Source: Octopus sinensis
Taxonomy: Eukaryota
Reading direction: 5' to 3'
NCBI RefSeq assembly: GCF_006345805.1
Contig: NW_021832230.1
Coordinates: 186,001-250,000, forward strand
DNA length: 64,000 nucleotides
Each line of letters begins with the position of its first letter. Within the stretch, counting starts at the first letter, position 1. Below, in pieces: positions 2,704-57,610 of this stretch. The translations under genes and the position numbers were made by a program. The notes beneath the pieces are model-generated. The model made no database searches and was not told where the DNA came from. It was given only the letters and a program-made list of their open reading frames with translations.

Positions 2704-3600
2704 CAGGGTTGTTAAAAATCATGATTTTTTTCAAAAAATCAAAAAAATCTGATTTTTTTGATTTAATCACGATTTTTTGATTTAAATCAGATTTTTTTGA
2801 ATTAATGATCTTTATTTCAAAACGACCCTTTCCACCTGGCTTATCAGAGAACCTCTCTCTTGTACATAAACACTGAAAAACGGCCACGCAGAACGATCTA
2901 TCGTAGTTCCTTATGTCCACGGGATCACTTAACTAGTTTGCATTACGCTTCTTTCTTTGTGGTCTTCGGGTAATAAATAAAAAAATATTTTCAAAGCGAA
3001 CTAAAATAAAAAACAAAAACAATGGAATCGTTTTATTTATTAAAAGCTTGTAAATGGAAACAAGTTTGGCTGCTTTTTCGATCCCCAGCCTATTGCGTAC
3101 ATTTGAATGTAGAAATCCGAATGTTGAAAAGATTCTTTCTATTCCACCTGTCGAAGCAACTGCTCCAAGAATTTTTTTGCATAGTGAAATTACTTGTGAA
3201 GGTAACTGGTATGAATTCGACTCCCACCAAGCTATAGGTGATACTTTACTCAATTGTTTAAATGGATCAGCTTTTGCTCTGAAATAATCAGAGTCGGAAG
3301 TGCATATTCATAATTTTGAGCACAATAACTCAATGCAATGTCAATCTCAACATTTGAAAGAGATTTCCCAACATGTCGGGTCGATCAAATTCGCAAGTAA
3401 GTGGAAAGGTGTTAATGCTTGTTTTGCTCGAATTCTCACTTTTCCTAAAATATTCGTACATCTTGTCAATATATGTCTGTTCAAGTTCTTTCCAAATTTC
3501 TACAGCATGACTAATCGTGGTAGAATCATTCTGAATTTTATCTAAAGCGACAGCAATTGGTTTAATAAGCATCAGATATTCTTCAACGCGTCGTTTTTAG
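2704..3600 (-). mobile_element. hAT transposon 3' half with terminal repeat
   Basis: ORF 2933-3253 has the hAT dimerisation motif WWES...ASTGGIERIFSTFGFLHSNVRNRL; terminus CAGGGTTG at 2704 is followed by repeated GATTT(T/A)AATC-like subterminal motifs. Confidence 0.8.
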
Positions 3601-5280: not shown

Positions 5281-5490
5281 TTTCTTGTAGCACTCAATAA
5301 ACATGAAACTTGGAAACAAAATAGACTTTATCTTTAAGAGATCGAATAGGAAGACGATTGGTCGCTGTGGTGCATAAAAGCGAGCAAAGCTCCTCCAATT
5401 TCTTTAAGATGAAGGCGTCTCATTTTTTAGAAGACTATTATAAACAAATTAAGGATTCATAACAAAAGGTAAATAATCACAGACTCAGGA

Positions 5491-5957
5491 CTAACGGGCT
5501 CTACCACGACCCCGTACGCGCGCCCTTCCCCGTCCTCTAGGTCTGACGATATTATTTTCTTGTTTTCTACGCTGACGTTCGTCATCTTTATCCAAAACTA
5601 CGAAATTGAATATTCATATTAAGACCTTCTCCTCTCTTCCTAACCTTCGGTCCGTCGTCGATTAGAAGAGAATCAAGCGGCAAACTATCGGGCAAGATAA
5701 AATAACGAATGTTGTTTCCACGGACTGAAAGAGTATCCAATTGATAGGTGTCTCCACTTTTAGTGGTCATTTTCACCGTCTTTAAATGAGTATTCATGTA
5801 AATGTCGACTCCTATTTTAATATTAGATTGATGCTTACCAGTAATAGTTCCATGAACTTGGGAAGAATTTTTTAATTCAATCGTGACAGTTTCGTGGCTC
5901 AACTTCATTAAAAAACTAGGAAAACTTAAAAACAGATCTAAACCTGACGAGCTTCAT
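5491..5957 (-). CDS. SNRPD1: snRNP core protein Sm D1, 4 exons
   Basis: Removing GT-AG introns 5943-5916 (28 nt), 5838-5812 (27 nt) and 5625-5598 (28 nt) gives [21 protein letters not shown]...HGTITGVD...[17 protein letters not shown] with an RG-rich tail ending at TAG 5491. Confidence 0.95.
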
Positions 5958-8739: not shown

Positions 8740-9700
8740 TACACATGCCACGAGCACCCTTGTCCAAGAGATTCTCCAACCCGTTACCGAATCTTTTATG
8801 GACTCAGAGTCAGTCGCCGTAGAAAGTCGCTGGCTTGGGTTGTCCCTTAAGTTTCCGCAGAATACACACGCACAGGACGAATGGGACAGGATTCTCTGTG
8901 ATCAGAAGTCAAACAACCTCAAGCCTAAGCTTAACAAACATAGCTTGGCTTGTTTATTGGGCGTCTTGCAACCATATTGACCGCCATCCCTATGAGATCG
9001 ATTTGAACCTTATTGGACGATGATTGCCTGAGGATCGGCGTCTCATTCTGCCTGGGGCTAAACGTATGCAGAGAACACTGGTGCCGCTGTGGATCAACCG
9101 TTGACCCCTTTGGATTGCACCCATTATCGTGTCAGAGAAGCTCCGGACGCTTTCCCCGACACGACATAGTCAAGCGGACTCTTGAAACTGCCGGATTCTC
9201 ATCACAGTTGGAATCGGTCGGCCTGGTTCGGGAGGATGGTAAACGTCCTGACGGCCTAACGACTTTCCCCTTCATCTGGGACGCAACTTGCACGGACACC
9301 TTCTCCGACGGAAACATCTTTACGTCAGCCACAGAGCCGGGCTCCGTGGCCAACCTTGCGGAAACATTAAAAGTCAAGAAATACAGTGCATTATCGCACC
9401 GTCATATCTTTGCCCCGATCGCAGTGGAGACGTCGAGAGTCCTCGGTCCCAGAACTAAAATATTCCGGTACTTTTGTAGTAGTCTACAGCCACTTTCTAG
9501 CGAGTTTCAAAATAATACTATTTTTTACAGTAGACTACTACAAAAGTACCAATATTCCTTATGGGGGAGCTGGCAAGCAGAAGAAAAAATGATCATCGGG
9601 ACGGATATGGCTTTTACAACGCATATCAAGGGCTATCTTGCGTGAGAATTGCCATTCCATCTTATCCTCTGCTGCTAATTAAATACTAAATAATTAATTT
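8740..9700 (+). mobile_element. CRE-clade retrotransposon 3' part
   Basis: ORF 9013-9645 has CCHC (CRCG...HPLSC), RH, DGKRPDGLTTFP, WDATCTDTFS and FAPIAVETS; interrupted by a MITE at 9467-9550. Confidence 0.9.
9467..9550. mobile_element. 84-bp micro-MITE with 21-bp perfect TIRs and 8-bp TSD
   Basis: GGTACTTTTGTAGTAGTCTAC (9467-9487) is the exact reverse complement of 9530-9550; AATATTCC is duplicated at 9459-9466 and 9551-9558. Confidence 0.88.
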
Positions 9701-15443: not shown

Positions 15444-16651
15444 ATGACACTAAGCTTCTTACTCATAAGAAATTTTTCTTCGGAGACTGAAGCTGTATCT
15501 AACATTGCTTCTAACTTGTTTTACGGGATTATAAACGGCAACAGAGGCGCACTTTCCCGTTCAGTAACACTGGTGGAATCGACAAATATTTATAAAAGGG
15601 AAATTGGGCAGAATATTATATCAAAATGCCTTAAATATGCCAAAGAAAACTCAGATCTCCAAAAGACGTTCCGAATTGGTATACTATGTTTATTTAAAAT
15701 ATTATAAACTAATCAAAACTAAAAATATAGGCATCTCAGGACCGCCTGGGGCCGGAAAAAGTACTTTTATAGAGTCGTTCGGTACTTTTCTGATTAAAAA
15801 GGAAAACAAAGTGGCTGTCCTTGCTGTTGATCCTTCTTCTGTAACTCGAGGAGGTACAATATTATTAAAATAATAAAATAAGGTTCACTCTTGGGTGATA
15901 AAGTGAGAATGCCTCGACTTTCATTGAACAAAAATGCCTATGTAAGACCGTCTCCAACAAGTGGCATGCTTGGGGGGGTTGCAAGAGTGACAAATGAAGT
16001 TCTTTTCCTTTGTGAAGCCGCCCAATATAACATTATTCTTATTGAGACTGTTGGTGTTGGCCAGTCAGAAACGGCTGTTGCTGATATGGTGGATTTGTTT
16101 TTACTGTTGATTCCTCCGACAGCTGGAGATGAAATGCAAGGTTGCAAAAATTAATAAATAATACTAATTTAAAATATAAACAAATCAAAGGAATGAAGAG
16201 GGGAATTACTGAACTGAGCGACATCATTGCAGTGACTAAAAGTGACTCAGACATGCTGACTCAGTCAAAACGTATTCAAGCAGATTACAAAAGCGCTCTT
16301 AGATTTTTGTCACAAAAATCCCCAAATTGGAAACCAACTGTACCTTGGGGATTTACAAAATGTATAGGTTATAAGGATATCTTCGATGAATCATGATGGA
16401 TTTGATCAATTATATAGCAAAATATTCGAATTTCGCTCCAAAATGATAGAAAGTGGGGAGTTTATGGAAAATCGACAAAAACAAAAGCAAGCTTGGTTAT
16501 AAAATCCCTTCAAAACAGTATTTGGGGAGCTGTTCAAGATAAATTTGGTGAAAGAATAACAAGTTTACAAGAAAAAGTTGCTAAAGATTTACTTACACCT
16601 TCTCAAGCAGTCGATCGTCTTCTAGATGAAATTTTAACCCGTAAATTATAA
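15444..16651 (+). CDS. MMAA: Methylmalonic aciduria type A protein (MeaB/ArgK GTPase), 6 exons
   Basis: [60 protein letters not shown]; introns include 15679-15730 (52 nt), 15854-15882 (29 nt) and 16496-16518 (23 nt); stop TAA 16649-16651. The start codon is uncertain. Confidence 0.93.
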
Positions 16652-19858: not shown

Positions 19859-21438
19859 TCAGGTATTTTTATTGATAAAACTTTCCAATATATTTATTGT
19901 ATTTTTCACATTCTTAGCTTTTGCCTTTATTGCTGCTTTGTGACGTTTAGTCTTGTTATGTAGATTCCAGGTTTTCTCATCAACATAAAACGTCATTTCA
20001 CAGATTTTACAAGTTCGCATGGATACGCCCCTCGATCTTTGCTCGACTTCAGTAATAAAATTAATCTTCTCTTTGGGAAATTGGCATTCACGTTTCTGAA
20101 TTATAATCACCAGAGACAATACAGCCAAATAGTCCGCAACAATGGTAATTGCCATTGGAATTACGTCTGTCGACAGATCCTTGGATCCTGTGGCATCTAA
20201 TTTATATACACAATAGCATTCAGGTCTACTACACCCCTCATAGGTCTCTGAAATAATACAAATAGTCATTAATTTTTACGAGTTAAAAAACGTTTTCTTA
20301 TCCAGCCAAGTTGTTGTCTGGCATAGCGCTTAGTTGAATTTTTCAACCTTTCAACGCCTGAAAATAGTTTTAAAAAAAATAACTTTTTTCAAGTAATTTT
20401 TTTCCTTCTATCGAGTCTTCGCACACATTTTCGTTAAGCATCAAATATTCGTGAAACTCCTTAAAGCCTATAGACTGGAAAATTCCCCGTTGATAGTCAT
20501 AATGTCTATAAATATTATTCATATACAACAACCCTTTCTGGGTTTTACGATTTTCACTATAACGATGATGAAAATCGACAAGTTCATCAACCAGACCATT
20601 TTCCAGCATTTTATCAACTCTTTCGTCAATTAACTTATCAAGCTCTGAAAATAAATATTTAAAAATCCAGACCTTTCAAATCCCGATAAACAAAAACGAT
20701 ACAAAAATCATCAATTCGGAGTCTATATTTTGTCCCTTGTCTTTGTGCAGAGTATAGTTCAGTGATAGACTTGCCAGTTCGTTTATAAACTTCAATCGCT
20801 CTAAAAAATGTTTTTAAAAAAACTTTTTTATTTTCCGAGAATCGTTTGGATGAAATTTTGAGGCATGAACAGAATCAATCTCCATTAACAATTTGTGGTT
20901 GTCCTCGTTCTCCTGGTCCACCAAAATATCTTTAAAATAATTTAGAAAAATCACCATTTGAATTATAATTATGACAAAAACTAATAAATTTTAGTAAATT
21001 ATTTTTAGTACTTAACTTCCAAAAGTGATTCCCAGAGAATCGATTCCAAATAATAATTTGTACCTCCCTCGATGATTGGAAGTCCACTGCCATTTTTGTA
21101 TAGATTTTCAATGTAAAATAGTTAAGTGAAAATGCATGAAAATATTAAATGATAATAAAGGATATAATTTGTAATGCAGAATCACTGTACATCTTGACAT
21201 TATAATTTTCATATAAAGGGTCCAAAAAGTCAATTAAATGATGAGGACACGCGTTTAACTCAGAAGGAGTGGGTTTATTGGTAATAATATTTAATCCTTT
21301 GTACATCTGCATAGCATCAGCATTTATAATGCTTCCATTAAATTTTTTGGCCAATGCAAATGCTATTTGTGATTTTCCAGAACCAGTTGGGCCAAGTACA
21401 GCTACAAGTGGACGCAATCGGCCACCACTAGTCTTCAT
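19859..21438 (-). CDS. TRIT1: tRNA dimethylallyltransferase (MiaA/MOD5 family) with C-terminal zinc finger, multi-exon
   Basis: [63 protein letters not shown]...HNKTKRH. Confidence 0.93.
21113..21165 (-). other. U12-type (minor spliceosome) AT-AC intron, 53 nt, in TRIT1
   Basis: Minus strand: CAA ATT | ATATCCTTT...TTTTCACTTAAC TATTTTAC | ATT GAA AAT. It removes an in-frame TAA and restores [25 protein letters not shown]. Confidence 0.9.
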
Positions 21439-21639: not shown

Positions 21640-22400
21640 GGATACCCTAATATTCTTCCCAAAGAAGTAGTAAGATAATGTTTAGAGAAATTGCTGCCAC
21701 TGAGCTAGGTTTAATTCCTATTTCAAATACTTCTGTGAGCAGACTGATCAAGGATATGTTTGATGACATCGAAACCCTTTTGGTTCGGCGAATAAAAAAA
21801 TCTGAATTTTTTCCATTTCAAGTAGATAAAAGCTCAGATATTACAAGAATGCAATTTTCTGTTTTATTTCGTTATATGGACGATGAATCCATTATTGAAG
21901 ATTTTTTTCCTCAAAGAGTCGTCGAAACAACAAAGGGATATGACATTTTCAATCTTATAAATTCATATTTCGAACATTTAAAGTTGGATTGGAATGAATG
22001 CATGGGTATCTGCACTGATGGTGTTCTATCAGGGACGGGGGATGATAGAGACTTTGTTTCTGTTGCGAAAAATAAAAATCCGTACTTAATTCACAAGCAT
22101 TATTTTATTCATCATGAAGCATGCTTTGGACAGGGTCGTAAAAATTATCAATTATATCAAAATGAGTCCGTTGTAATTACGATAGCTCTCGGAACTTTAT
22201 GAAAATACAGAACATTCAATTTTGATTTACCGCACTGAACTAAAATGGCTTCGAATTGTTTCTATGAACTATACAAAAAAAGTTGGATAACTTTATTGAA
22301 TGCTTTAATAATGAATGTTATTGTTGCAAGATAGCACACCTTGCCGATATTTTTAATGAACTTAATGTTCTCAATAGCAGCATACAAATCTGTCGAGTTG
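21640..22400 (+). mobile_element. hAT Buster/Charlie (ZBED5-like) transposase pseudogene
   Basis: IPISNTSVSRLIKDM...FQVDKSSDI...ICTDG...IHHEA...IAHLADIFNELNVLNSSIQ. Confidence 0.85.
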
Positions 22401-22437: not shown

Positions 22438-22509
22438 CTCCCCGACCGGGAATCGAACCCGGGCCACCGCGATGACAACGCGGCATACTAACCATTATAC
22501 TATCGGGGA
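22438..22509 (-). tRNA. tRNA-Asp (GTC)
   Basis: 72-nt cloverleaf: acceptor stem TCCCCGA/TCGGGGA, anticodon stem CCGCG/CGCGG with loop TTGTCAT, T arm CCGGG TTCGATT CCCGG; T-run downstream. Confidence 0.95.
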
Positions 22510-23944: not shown

Positions 23945-24340
23945 TAAAAAGTGATTGTGAGACTTTGAAGGACTTACGCCCTATAACGTGTATGCCAACT
24001 TTGTATAAACTTGTCACCAAATGTGTTAATGCCAAACTGACCGATTTCATCGAGGCATTTGGCTTAATCTCAGAGAATCATCTTGAAACGAGGAAGCAAT
24101 GTCAAGGCGTCAAAGAGCAGGCCCTCATTAACCAATGCTTAAATAAGGAGTACGGAAATGCCGTCTATTTCGCTTGGGTCAATGTCAATAAAATATTTGA
24201 CTCAGTTTATCATGAGTTATTGTTCCATGTATTGGATTGCTCTTGAATACCACATTGGATCGTCAACTTTGTGAATAGCATAGTCAAGAATTGAACAGTA
24301 AACTTACATATTGATGGGAAAAGAATTGGGAAAGTAAAGT
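23945..24340 (+). mobile_element. R4/Dong-clade RT N-terminal fragment, followed by an 85-bp RTE piece (about 24353-24437)
   Basis: LRPITCMPTLYKL...QGVKEQALIN...FDSVYH; the following 85 bp match 28189-28273 with about 3 mismatches. Confidence 0.85.
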
Positions 24341-30439: not shown

Positions 30440-30910
30440 TTGATTATTGAGAAAACAAATTAAGTTAGGAATGGGCAGAGGGGAAGCTCCGGGGGGCTAA
30501 GGCACGCACCCTCCTGCGGAAAGTACCGCATGCGTGTTGCCACGGAGAATGGCGATGGATATCCGCTGCAATAGCCACGAAACCTCGCGTGGCTCTTTCA
30601 TCCTGTGGGCCAATTTCCTCCCGATGTCGCTGATGAAGGCCGAGGTTAGAGACCCTGCGACGCCCGATGTCTCCAAAGCGATTGGTACGAATATAAAACG
30701 GCATCCAAGTTCCTGGTATTTTTTAATTTTGGCCGTCTCAGCCTTTTCCGCAGCGGACCCGGGGGAAGTGGCAGATGACATGATTGCCGATGGAAAGAAT
30801 CGATGCACGTAGCATCCCAGACGAGGCACTTGCCGTCCCGAAAAGGAAAGATTGTCATTCCGTCTGGGCGTTTGCCGTCACCACGGTCCAATCCGACAGG
30901 CTCAAGTTGT
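30440..30910 (-). mobile_element. CRE-clade 3' end (RLE domain)
   Basis: [29 protein letters not shown]...[11 protein letters not shown]...WLLQRISIAILRGN. Confidence 0.9.
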
Positions 30911-31859: not shown

Positions 31860-33500
31860 AAGGCAACTATTTGCTAAAATAGGACTATCTTATAAATGGG
31901 GAAGCTAGCTCCAGGCGACCAAGTATTATGCTAAACATTGAATTATGATTTTTCGTTGACCAATATTCATTTCTTTAATCTAAAAAAGTGTGAAATGAGG
32001 TTATGGTGACTCTGTCGTACGGAAAGTCGATTCTTTTTTCAACCTGTGGTACCTCGATGATGCAACCATCGGGGGCCCCTCTGATACCGTGATTCAGGAT
32101 ATTTTCAACATAATTCCCACCCTCCGTGAAATTGGACTGGAAGTAAACGTCAGCAAGTGCGAGCTTATAAATATCTCTTGCTCGCACGAAGAATTCGGTT
32201 CCGCACTAAACAAGCTGCAACTTCGCCTGCCGGGCTGAAAACCACACCCATTGATGATGTTCTATTCCTCGGCGCGCCCATGGGCCAATCCAACTTAAGA
32301 AGTCGCTATCTGAGAAAGCCAAATGGGTCACTGATTTCACAAATAAGCTCATGTTGCTTGATTCTCACTACGGATTTTTCGTGCTCAGAGCAACCCATGT
32401 TGCCAAGGCTTCTATATTTGCTGCGAACTTCAAAATGCTCAATACAATCCGACATGCTTCAATCGCTCGATACTTCTCTGAAGTTGGCCGCTGAAAAAAT
32501 CCTAAACATATCCTTTGATGACGCTGGTTGAACTTGCTGCAAATTACCTCTACGCCTTGGCGGAGTTGGACTCCGTTCACCTCTGGACATGGCTCTTCCT
32601 GCATTCCTCTCCTCACGTGCGAGCTCCCAAGCCCTCATCACCCAAATCCTACGTAACTCTCGCGGATTGAAGAGGACCGGGTTTTCTCTGGAGCTTGCGA
32701 ATTCTGGAAGGGATCTGGATTGGCCATTCCATCTAACATTTCATGCTAATGGGAATGGGATGATATCTCCAGCAAAGCTAAAATGGAAGCAATCAGACCT
32801 ACATTGGATCAGCATCGCCTCGCTTGTTTCGGTGCCGCTGCCAGACCTGAAAGTGGGGCGTGGCATATGCCCTCCCTTGCTCCCAATCTGGAACCCTTCT
32901 CGATAATGACTGTGTGAGGATTGGCGTAGCAATGCGCTTGGGACTTAATGTCTGTTCGGGGGGCCAATGCCGATGTGGGAGTAAAGTCGATACCAAAGGA
33001 CTACATCCCCTGTCATGCAGAAGGAGTGCTGGCCGTGCTCCCAGACACTCCGCTATCAACGAGACTATTTCGGCTGCGTTACAAGCAGCTGGATTCCCGA
33101 CAGAACTGGAACCCGTTGGGCTTGACCGTGGAGACGGTAAACGCCCAGATGGAGTCACCATTTTCCCGTGGAGTAATGGGAAATGCCTCGCGTGGGACTC
33201 CACGTGCACAGACACCTTCTCAAAGACCAATATAGTTGACTCCGCGATCAGTCCAGGCTCAGCCGCTGAGAAGGCTGAGGTACATAAAGCTCAGAATATT
33301 CCAACCTGCTGGACAACTTTATCTTCTCCCCAATATCTGTAGAAACCTCCGGGGCCATGAGCCAAAAATCGTTTGAACTCGTCGTTAAAAATCGGGAATC
33401 TGATCTCGAGAAGCCGGAGAGAGCCTCGGGAGAAGCAATGGTTGTTCCAAGAATATCCATTGCGATCCTGAGGGGCAACGTCTTCTCGATCATCAGCAGC
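31860..33500 (+). mobile_element. Longest CRE-clade remnant (RT YLDD, CCHC and RLE)
   Basis: WYLDDATIGG, LPLRLGGVGLRS, CRCG...HPLSC, DGKRPDGVTIFPWSNGKCLAWDSTC; several frameshifts. Confidence 0.92.
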
Positions 33501-37619: not shown

Positions 37620-38030
37620 CTGCCTATATCGAAAACGAGTTTTCTCGGAGTATGGCTATTACAATCTTTTTTTAGCCATAATTTTTCTCGTTGATCCCTC
37701 TCCTTTCTGGCAACATTCATCCGAGTTTGTGTAAAAACTCAGCAGTCATTAGACAATGTCTCGACCGCAAAAGGGGGTAAATCGGCGGCAGTCCCCAAGC
37801 AAAGAATATTTCTTGATTTTTAAGTTTTCCACGATCGAAACAGCTGCTCCAAGTGCCTGAACCGATTTAAGGAGGCTCGTGCTTGAATAAGTATCAACAC
37901 AGGTTTCATCCCAGACCAAGGATCTTCCAGATGTGAAAGGGAAAACGGTTCATCTTGTCAGCTCTCTTTCCACCTCCTAGATCGAGACCCATTCGTTCAT
38001 GCTGTGCTGGGAAGGCTGTAGATTTCAGAG
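37620..38030 (-). mobile_element. CRE-clade 3' fragment
   Basis: GLDLGGGKRADKM..FPF...PFAVETLS...DQREKLWL. Confidence 0.7.
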
Positions 38031-38623
38031 CTCTGAAGATCACACGTTCAGAGCAGCGTGGCGTGGTCGTCTTCCAGCGCTTCTCCTTCCCATCAACTGT
38101 CTTCCCGTATTGGCATCCGTTCTTCTGACAAACGTCTAGTCCTAACCTTTGTCCGATTCCAATTTTCAATGAATCGTCGTTTAAAAAACTCAAGAAATTT
38201 TGACAAGGTATTGCACCAAGCCATGGTACATTCCCTCCACTTGTAGCTGACACCAAACAAGCAAGAAGCTGTTGATATTTTTCTTTTTAAGGTCTTCCAA
38301 AATTTTGAAGGAGACGAATATTTTCCCAATTATTTTGTTTTGTTGAATTTTTGGAAATTTTAAGTTCGGACCCGTTCCATTGCTTTTAACCAAGTTCGTA
38401 GAAGCGGACGTTGATTAGTGACTCAATAGTCTGTTTGCGAGATTTTTCTATCAAAAGTAGACTGTATTATTGTTCGTAGCAATGTGAACAACGAAGTAGT
38501 TAGACAAAAATGCTTTCAACAAAAAATTAAATTTAAGATTTATTAAAAAATAAATAACAATAAAAATTCAAAATATTTATATGCATGCGAAATTAAATTA
38601 TAATTTAGAGAATAAATAATTAA

Positions 38624-53250: not shown

Positions 53251-53546
53251 TCTTAATAATAAAATGGTATGGTGTGTGTCTGTCTGTCTGTCTGTGTGTC
53301 TGTCTGTCTGTCTGTGCACACCCACATTCAAATTGTTACAAACCAGATCAAATTGTCAAAACCTTCCCTTTTGTAGTTATTCGATAATGAGGCACAATAA
53401 AAGGTTGATCTTAATAATAAAATGGTATGGTGTCTGTCTGTCTGTGTGTCTGTCTGTCTGTCTGTGCACACCCACATTCAAATTGTTACAAACCAGATCA
53501 AATTGTCAAAACCTTCCCTTTTGTAGTTATTCGATAATGAGGCACA
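53251..53546. repeat. Two 158-bp tandem units containing a (TCTG)n microsatellite; possible non-autonomous Helitron 5' end
   Basis: Units start A|TCTTAATAATAAAATGG at 53251 and 53409. Confidence 0.7.
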
Positions 53547-53549
53547 TAA

Positions 53550-53845
53550 AAAAATTATTTTCTGCGTTTTTGTTAAAATGACCAACAAGAAAGTCCTCGA
53601 CTCACATGATGTGGTCCCCCAAAACCTTCAAGCCAAAAAATTAAAAAAAATTATTTTCTGCGTTTTTGTTAAAATGAACAACAAGAAAGTCCTCGACTTA
53701 CATGATGTGGTCCCCCAAAACCTTCAAGCCAAAAATTTAAAAAAAATTATTTTCTGCGTTTTTGTTAAAATGAACAACAAGAAAGTCCTCGACTCACATG
53801 ATGTGGTCCCCCAAAACCTTCAAGCCAAAAAATTAAAAAAAATTT
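53550..53845. repeat. 96-bp tandem repeat, 3 copies
   Basis: ATTATTTTCTGCG at 53554, 53650 and 53746. Confidence 0.92.
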
Positions 53846-54972
53846 CTCAAATCCGTTTATATATCATCTAAACTAAAAATCAATGAACGCTGTTTTTTTC
53901 TAAATTAAATTATTCTTATTACTTTCTTCCTATTTATATCCAATCTATAAATAAAAAATAAACTGCAGTTTGATTAAATTTTAATTAGTTTAGACTGAAA
54001 TGAAAAATTGCATTAATTATGATCCACTATTATTAACTAGCAATTTTTTTTATCAATTATTTTTTTTCTGGATACAAAGAATCAATAACATTTATAAAAA
54101 AATTCTTAGCTTAATATCAACAATCTTTTACTATGATACTTTTTCCGCCTTTGTGTAACGAGGAAAATAAGATTTTCCTAGTTTCGATTAGAATCTTGGT
54201 TTTATGTAATCTATCTTGATGTTTCCTCATGGTGAACTAAAAAAGAAATTTATCTACATGACATTGATTTTTTAATAATGAGATAATTTAAATAATTAAC
54301 AATTACAATCCTGGTTAAAATCGAAACTAAACATAATAAAAGCGGATTAAAAGCTTACATATTTCAAAGTCCATTCTAATCACTTTTTAAAAAATCTTTA
54401 AGGTCACTAAATTAAAAATAATTGTAATCCAATTATTTGATTTCAATAGAAAATATGACTTTATGGCCAGATAAATTCAGCAATTTTTTGGCCCTTTTTT
54501 GCAGGCGGGAACCAAAAATCGGGACTAAAAATTTAAAAATAACCAGATTTTTAGTAACAAATCTTATTTTGTAATTTTTTGGACTTGTAGTTATCTAAAT
54601 TAAAATATTGAAAAATTCAAAATTTTAAATAAAATTTTCCCGGACATTTCCATATACACTAATAATTCAGTAGGGAAATCTCCCAAATTAGCTTCTTGAA
54701 TGCTATTCCATGGCATTGAATTTGTTCTTTTTTTTAATATTATGCAATCTCACATGGATCTTCCTTAAAGTCGATAGAATTAATACTTTGAATAGCATCT
54801 TTAACAGTATAAAAAGTATCTTCACATTTCTTTTTTCATTCGATTAGACATTTGTAAAATGCTATGTTTGCTAGGTTCCGCTCCAGTGAATCAAAATTTA
54901 TCGCCTTCTTTGCATTCAAAACAATTTTTCCATTGTTCGATAACGAGGAAACTATCTTTTGGATTTTGTTCA

Positions 54973-57274: not shown

Positions 57275-57610
57275 ATGTGTGAGAATCCGTTATTTTACGA
57301 TTTTAAAGAAAGTTTCGACGATCAGGAAGTATCATTTCATATAACAAATATGCCTGGTTTTTTAATAGTATGGATAGGAACTTTGCCCGTTTTATCGTCA
57401 CTGTACATGAGTTCCCCCATATTCTCGGATCATCCATCATACAGTTTGTGGGAAAGTAATGACGAGAGTAATTATAGTTGTATTGCTTCGAGACTTTCAA
57501 TGATATGTGGAAAAACTGTTTTTCTTTCTATTAGTCTAAACAACTTGGATAATGATTTTCTTAATTTTATTCAATCTCGTATTGCTGGTTATCTTCGAAA
57601 TATTAATTAA
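57275..57610 (+). CDS. PSMG4: Proteasome assembly chaperone 4 (PAC4), intronless
   Basis: VSFHITNMPGFLIVWIG...IASRLSMICGKTVFLS...IQSRI parallels PAC4 VHFHV..L..SLFLWVG...LAQRLA.KT.KQVFVS...VENRI. Confidence 0.85.
   Translation: MCENPLFYDFKESFDDQEVSFHITNMPGFLIVWIGTLPVLSSLYMSSPIFSDHPSYSLWESNDESNYSCIASRLSMICGKTVFLSISLNNLDNDFLNFIQSRIAGYLRNIN

Follow-up and report, generated by a model that had tools for sequence, protein, structure and literature searches.

A 53-nt AT-AC intron, very likely of the U12 type, in the TRIT1 gene of a probable dicyemid contig assembled with Octopus sinensis

The 64-kb window analysed here, which corresponds to approximately positions 186001-250000 of the 279-kb contig VCDQ01001615.1 in the Octopus sinensis assembly GCA_006345805.1, contains a gene for a TRIT1/Mod5-type tRNA isopentenyltransferase, whose first two exons are separated by a short intron with AT-AC termini that is U12-type, i.e. 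minor, by its sequence (table 1). Read from an ATG at 21438 to a TGA stop that ends at 19859, the spliced gene specifies a protein which matches the Pfam family IPPT (9.1e-58), aligns with yeast Mod5 (3eph) over residues 11-436 (E 3.7e-52) and has animal TRIT1 proteins as its best database homologues (35-41% identity). The P-loop, the DxMQxY, PHH, GGTNYY and HPND motifs and the zinc finger are all kept, and the 362 codons downstream of the AT-AC intron are open and conserved. In RefSeq, the names given at the locus are 'tRNA dimethylallyltransferase-like' and 'adenylate isopentenyltransferase 5, chloroplastic-like [Octopus sinensis]'. A ciliate genetic code, considered in view of the TGA stop and the tiny introns, was ruled out, as all 453 codons are free of in-frame TAA and TAG and all best hits are metazoan. 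Overall, our analysis makes it highly likely that the segment is a genuine U12-type AT-AC intron, i.e. a compacted orthologue of the TRIT1 minor intron found in vertebrates and a nemertean, which resides in the genome of an animal that is itself most likely a dicyemid.

On the minus strand, the segment 21165..21113 reads ATATCCTTTATTATCATTTAATATTTTCATGCATTTTCACTTAACTATTTTAC. Its layout is ATATCCTTT ... TTCACTTAAC-N8 with AC at the end, and TTCACTTAACTATTTTAC makes up the 3' portion. U12-type branch sites are located approximately 8-20 nucleotides (nt) from the 3' end of the intron, and a polypyrimidine tract is not required. Here, the branch core CACTTAAC agrees with TCCTTAAC at six of eight positions, with its CTTAAC core intact, and the adenosines that could act as branch point, 21123 and 21122 (-), are 10 and 9 nt away from the 3' end, a spacing comparable to that of the orthologous introns in a capuchin (CTTAAT + 6 nt) and a pufferfish. 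Inside the 53-nt segment there is no further GT or AG. If unspliced, the exon 1 frame, an open reading frame (ORF) at 21145..21438, continues from ...SDSALQI through ISFIII into a TAA within the segment; excision rejoins ...ALQI to the exon 2 frame, with an alignment that is gapless across the junction against both yeast Mod5 and bacterial MiaA structures (2qgn). The sole nearby GT..AG pair, i.e. the GT at 21185 with the AG ending at 21087, is out of frame, because a length of 2 mod 3 would be required and its 99 nt are 0 mod 3; its use would also remove conserved residues. A preceding sequence-only reading of this DNA had noticed the stop in the frame, the 5' motif, the branch motif 8 nt from the end, the AC terminus and the unsuitable frame of this one GT-AG alternative, and each of these details is confirmed on the minus strand.

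Table 1. Positions of the features discussed, in coordinates of the 64-kb window.
Feature	Position	Strand	Details
TRIT1/Mod5-type tRNA isopentenyltransferase gene	19859..21438	-	8 exons, 453 aa, C-terminal matrin-type zinc finger
TRIT1 exon 1	21166..21438	-	P-loop; ends ...ALQI
AT-AC intron, U12-type by sequence	21113..21165	-	53 nt, phase 0, between codons I91 and I92
5' splice site ATATCCTTT	21157..21165	-	9/9 vs U12-type consensus RTATCCTTT
Branch-site element TTTTCACTTAAC	21121..21132	-	ends 8 nt before the intron 3' end
3' terminal AC of the intron	21113..21114	-	
TRIT1 exon 2	21012..21112	-	
Six GT-AG introns of TRIT1	20248..21011 (span)	-	
TRIT1 GT-AG intron	21011-20981	-	31 nt
TRIT1 GT-AG intron	20954-20930	-	25 nt
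TRIT1 GT-AG intron	20823-20801	-	23 nt
TRIT1 GT-AG intron	20672-20645	-	28 nt
TRIT1 GT-AG intron	20383-20358	-	26 nt
TRIT1 GT-AG intron	20279-20248	-	32 nt
hAT C-terminal dimerisation domain relic	2933-3253	-	
SmD1 gene	~5490-5957	-	127 aa, RG-rich tail; GT-AG introns 28, 27, 28 nt
Cysteine-rich-motif ORF	9013-9645	+	
MMAA/MeaB G-protein gene	15445-16650	+	341 aa; GT-AG introns 52, 29, 50, 28, 23 nt
ZBED5/FAM200 RNase-H-like ORF	21678-22202	+	174 aa; PF27073, DUF4371 in record; cluster representative XP_029654424.1
tRNA-Asp(GTC)	22438-22509	-	64 bits Rfam; ~1 kb upstream of TRIT1, immediately past the ZBED5-like ORF
Reverse-transcriptase (RVT_1) fragment	23965-24246	+	
Cysteine-rich-motif ORF	30497-30829	-	
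Cysteine-rich-motif ORF	32860-33342	+	
Cysteine-rich-motif ORF	37906-38256	-	
Two adjacent ORFs with internal near-perfect duplications	53264-53871	+	VCLSVCLSVCLCTPTFKLLQTRSNCQNLPFCSYSIMRH x2; NNKKVLD.HDVVPQNLQAKKLKKIIFCVFVKM x3
Proteasome assembly chaperone 4 (PAC4) ORF	57275-57610	+	E 2.2e-07

Three TRIT1 homologue loci were fetched as genomic DNA, and the proteins were mapped onto this DNA for intron positions. In the pufferfish Tetraodon, the junction is ALSL / ATATCCTTTCAC...TTTTCCTTAAAACACCCCCAC / IDDM, with an AT-AC intron of 1624 nt whose 5' site is ATATCCTTT; in the capuchin Sapajus it is ASAL / ATATCCTTAGG...TCTTTCTTAATGTTCAC (also TTTCTTAATGTTCAC) / IEDI, again with an AT-AC intron (3303 nt); and in the nemertean Tubulanus polymorphus it is ALAI / GTATCCTTATT...GGCCTTAACTTAAGTTTCAG / IDKL, where the intron is GT-AG with U12 consensus (776 nt). 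All three are in phase 0 and fall into the same alignment column as the window junction, in which the AT-AC intron separates ALQI from IENL. The intron in the window thus shares with its vertebrate counterparts the gene, the codon boundary (after the L/I of A-L-x-L/I), the phase, the ATATCCTT 5' site and, a few nt ahead of the terminal AC, a branch site resembling TCCTTAA. It differs from them in being far shorter, in residing in a genome with introns mostly of 23-32 nt and in being known from sequence only. The sequence-only reading had suggested a minor intron at this junction of vertebrate TRIT1, and the pufferfish and capuchin genes bear this out with identical junction and phase; the comparison of intron positions with TRIT1 orthologues, which it had also proposed, shows the same codon boundary and phase in the nemertean as well. 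Human TRIT1 is on a published list of minor-intron-containing genes (PMC7507305).

Switches of the terminal-dinucleotide subtype between AT-AC and GT-AG are common among U12 introns, and nemerteans belong to the Spiralia. The Tubulanus intron has GT-AG in place of AT-AC termini and is much longer than the 53-nt intron, but shares with it the position, the phase, the 5' consensus (GTATCCTT) and, at a distance of 13 nt from the 3' end, GGCCTTAAC. Among the comparisons made here, it may be the closest, because dicyemids have been placed in the Spiralia too (PMC6736024). Since six of the seven introns of the window gene are at Tubulanus positions (five at Tetraodon positions), this TRIT1 gene appears to retain ancestral intron positions, with that of the 53-nt intron among them. 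The intron is missing from TRIT1 of a beetle (Diorhabda) and from one marine metagenome sequence of an unidentified marine eukaryote, which is consistent with loss, and the TRIT1 gene of Oculina, which is flagged as low quality, is intron-less. The 5' site, the branch element near the 3' end, the AT-AC termini, the restoration of the frame and the positional orthology, i.e. the sequence features by which a U12-type intron is recognized, are therefore all found at this junction.

Furthermore, the same assembly contains two additional contigs, VCDQ01011650.1 and VCDQ01009522.1 (64 kb and 30 kb), with ~99% identical copies of the locus, and the 53-nt intron is identical in all three. A local assembly error is excluded, because the same 53 nt are present in three contigs that are ~1% apart. 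These copies are either haplotigs or several parasite genotypes, and their TRIT1 frame is open in the regions compared. The ordinary introns of the gene show small differences between the haplotypes: single-base indels occur in those at 20823-20801 (23 versus 22 nt) and 20672-20645 (28 versus 29 nt), and another tiny TRIT1 intron varies at +4 of its 5' site (GTAC to GTAG). To judge from these haplotypes, the length and internal sequence of the tiny introns seem free to vary.

The composite motif by itself is without significance window-wide: RTATCCTT occurs at 8 sites in the window with 5.5 expected, and a permissive pattern of RTATCCTT, CTTAAY and AC/AG appears somewhere in 31% of Markov-simulated 64-kb sequences. 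Several observations count against reading the segment as a U12-type intron of a dicyemid. First, two branch-site positions are off consensus (CACTTAAC versus TCCTTAAC). Second, the haplotypes are too alike to reveal selective constraint, with approximately one change or fewer expected in 53 nt. Third, NCBI annotates the locus with ab initio (Gnomon) models of 204-208 aa that are mis-spliced, jumping from ...NYNVKMY to distant exons, and a transcript-derived protein across the junction is absent from the protein collection: exact look-ups with spliced TRIT1, SmD1 and MMAA and with the read-through ORFs, together with a junction-spanning peptide search, returned nothing but these faulty Gnomon proteins and a marine sequence that is unrelated and has no intron. 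Fourth, Rfam searches of the window (gathering threshold and E<=1) detected only the tRNA-Asp and no minor small nuclear RNA (snRNA), the near-identical copies have no snRNA either, and minor-spliceosome proteins are absent from the window; for a genome of ~65 Mb, these results are uninformative. Finally, the assignment to dicyemids draws on host, intron size and divergence rather than on similarity to a reference Dicyema sequence.

Because the composite motif is not rare enough, window-wide motif statistics were dropped in favour of position and orthology. Among the RTATCCTT sites of the window, all three elements come together only at this site, and a compatible branch site and 3' end are never found together in a coding context at the remaining RTATCCT sites. 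For fixed boundaries, the chance of such an arrangement is ~1e-7, as roughly estimated from base composition. The significance of the site comes from its exact placement, i.e. at a frame-restoring codon boundary at which other animals have a U12-type intron. Conceivably, the segment could also be retained, with the gene being a pseudogene or specifying a truncated product of 97 aa and the U12 resemblance being residual. The unspliced frame does run into the TAA seven codons into the segment, and the lack of a transcript-derived protein across the junction in the protein collection would fit this explanation. Removal of the AT-AC intron and the six canonical tiny introns, however, leaves 453 open codons with all the motifs listed above, the frame is open in three haplotypes in the regions compared, and a dead gene in a fast-evolving genome would have gained stops. 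Retention of the segment is thus highly improbable.

A further question is to which organism this genome belongs. The contig was deposited as Octopus sinensis, and the RefSeq models on it bear octopus protein names. It might therefore be real octopus DNA or come from some other octopus-associated eukaryote, such as a myxozoan, an apicomplexan or a ciliate, in which case the retention of minor splicing by a reduced animal would be misattributed; the basis of the dicyemid assignment, i.e. host, intron size and divergence, would leave room for this. However, the MMAA protein encoded in the window is just 50% identical to that of Octopus vulgaris, no closer than to scallop or frog MMAA, cephalopods are absent among the best 120 matches of TRIT1 (best match 41% identity), and the introns of 23-52 nt are such that Gnomon failed on them. 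A ciliate or apicomplexan is countered by the standard genetic code and by best matches to metazoan TRIT1, MMAA and SmD1. Myxozoans are not known as typical parasites of octopuses. For them, minor splicing has been reported lost (PMC10639083). Taken together, such a misattribution is quite improbable.

What is known about dicyemids fits the window in several respects. Dicyema japonicum, which was collected from O. sinensis, has a GC content of 36.7%, 49% repeats with many copies of long interspersed nuclear elements and a mean intron length of 38 bp (PMC6736024); a median intron length of 27 bp has been given for dicyemids (PMC6543705); and among animals, introns <30 bp have been reported only from myxobolid myxozoans and D. 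japonicum (PMC13644364). The window, with a GC content of ~33%, has introns mostly <30 nt, is associated with a cephalopod host without being host DNA and is rich in reverse-transcriptase and hAT relics, debris in keeping with published descriptions of the dicyemid genome as repeat-rich. By these sequence features, the contig is most likely DNA of a dicyemid, i.e. a renal parasite of the octopus, that was assembled along with that of its host. The three contigs of the public O. sinensis reference assembly and the RefSeq proteins predicted on them thus very probably represent parasite DNA.

In this lineage, a U12-type intron of hundreds or thousands of nt would have been compacted to 53 nt in a genome whose ordinary introns are mostly 23-32 nt long. 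For its removal, the U11/U12 di-snRNP (small nuclear ribonucleoprotein) would pair with ATATCCTTT and the CTTAAC branch site, U4atac/U6atac.U5 would join next, and the branch point would be either of the two adenosines located 9-10 nt before the intron 3' end, such that ...CAA ATT would become joined to ATT GAA.... The lineage very probably still has a working minor spliceosome and still encodes its components, as suggested by a perfect 5' site and a correctly spaced branch site persisting in a very fast-evolving lineage, the proteins of which are only 40-50% identical to those of any other animal. The perfect 9-mer stands out because the U2-type 5' splice sites of dicyemids are the least conserved known (PMC2483917). 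Moreover, all 14 introns modelled besides the AT-AC one are GT-AG, and thus the ordinary spliceosome seems to need GT-AG, with the AT-AC intron being a distinct class.

The main alternative is that of a fossil U12-type intron, i.e. that the minor spliceosome has been lost and its role in removing the AT-AC intron has passed, perhaps at low efficiency, to the major spliceosome, which processes the rare U2-type AT-AC introns as well. Such losses have precedents in nematodes, myxozoa, oikopleurids and tardigrades (PMC10639083), the weak 5' consensus of dicyemid major introns (PMC2483917) may reflect a permissive spliceosome, and no minor snRNA was seen in the window and its near-identical copies. 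Yet the 14 neighbouring introns are strictly GT-AG, and without pairing to U11/U6atac and U12 nothing would maintain a 9/9 5' site and a spaced branch site at 40-50% protein identity. Rare U2-type AT-AC introns do exist, but it is established that these do not combine ATATCCTTT with a TCCTTAAC-like branch site. They resemble the intron in the window in their AT-AC termini but have neither its ATATCCTT 5' site nor its TCCTTAAC-like branch site. A fossil intron is therefore improbable, and removal by a retained minor spliceosome is the explanation we prefer.

How short this intron is has to be seen in its local context. The 14 GT-AG introns of TRIT1, SmD1 and MMAA measure 23, 23, 25, 26, 27, 28, 28, 28, 28, 29, 31, 32, 50 and 52 nt (median 28), in line with the tiny introns that the sequence-only reading had ascribed to the surrounding genome. 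None of the other introns among the 15 modelled is as long as the AT-AC intron with its 53 nt, yet it is within the local length range. Two findings weaken the additional suggestion that the minimum size for minor splicing may be close to 53 nt: GT-AG introns of 50 and 52 nt are located nearby, and with the minor introns of Blastocystis (mean 42 nt, median 39; PMC10639083) taken into account, 53 nt is not near a known minimum. A single example supports no statement about a length floor for minor introns. Blastocystis resembles the lineage in the window in that minor introns have shrunk along with major introns in a reduced parasite genome, and its minor introns are strongly AT-AC-rich and often in phase 0; in contrast, this stramenopile has minor introns in the hundreds (PMC10639083).

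The MMAA gene, which is located 5 kb from the AT-AC intron and colinear with human MMAA (2www; E 3e-102), mixes introns of ~50 and ~25 nt within a single gene. For its intron 4, a 50-nt GT-AG segment was rejected as out of frame, and the 28-nt intron adopted instead restored colinearity. In SmD1, the 27-nt intron is in frame and stop-free, and a naive ORF therefore reads through it. The top database match of MMAA, a 444-aa MeaB-like ORF on JARCCX010172276.1 (GCA_029782595.1), was rejected as a relative, since it comes from a 2.2-kb contig of an unrelated assembly. In this ORF, the GTPase core is duplicated in tandem, which represents either a chimera of assembly or annotation or a real internal duplication.

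At the level of intron evolution, the class of this intron is ordinary, and the intron is an orthologue of a known human minor intron; it is the lineage and the size that are new. Losses of minor splicing have occurred several times among fast-evolving, reduced animals, and where and why it is retained is a question in the evolution of introns. An intact ancestral U12-type intron would add the dicyemids to the lineages that retain minor splicing in spite of extreme genome reduction. The most interesting point is the contrast with the myxozoans: myxobolid myxozoans show a convergent extreme shortening of introns (<30 nt) in parasitic animals (PMC13644364), but the minor spliceosomal system of myxozoans is reported lost (PMC10639083), with minor snRNAs not found in Thelohanellus kitauei (bioRxiv 10.1101/2022.10.12.511939), whereas the lineage in the window keeps at least one intact U12-type intron. 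Large surveys of minor introns left out introns <30 nt, and Dicyema is absent from their text; the orthonectid Intoshia is named in the figure legend of one survey among the species compared for minor-intron conservation (PMC10639083). Within the searchable literature, dicyemid minor splicing was not the subject of any paper that we found.

It is also possible, although we put this forward only tentatively, that dicyemids have kept a working minor spliceosome amid the shrinkage of their introns to the animal minimum, with U12-type introns of ~50 nt that are the shortest known in animals and consistently longer than their U2-type neighbours. If so, this length difference would be a natural measure of the extra length required for U11/U12 bridging from the 5' site to the branch site, and dicyemids and myxobolid myxozoans, as the only other animals with introns <30 nt, would have seen opposite fates of the minor spliceosome, which the latter discarded. 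Introns of this kind would also provide very short natural substrates for studying how small an animal U12-type intron can be.

The surroundings of TRIT1 contain further, mostly repetitive features. The ZBED5-like ORF is arranged head-to-head with TRIT1 at a distance of 240 bp from the TRIT1 ATG, such that the two have a short intergenic region in common; it is a truncated fragment of a hAT-type transposase, either domesticated or decaying. The cysteine-rich ORFs share the motif ...RIGV..RLGLNVC....C.CG..VD..G.H.LSC.....R..RH..., then DATCTDTF, and have no match in Pfam. These ORFs probably represent the C-terminal portion of a non-LTR (long terminal repeat) retroelement family, of which several decayed copies are present, and the window reaches its highest GC content (44.8%) in the copy at 32-34 kb. 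The two adjacent ORFs at 53264-53871 (+), finally, represent a local tandem repeat with units of ~150-200 bp.

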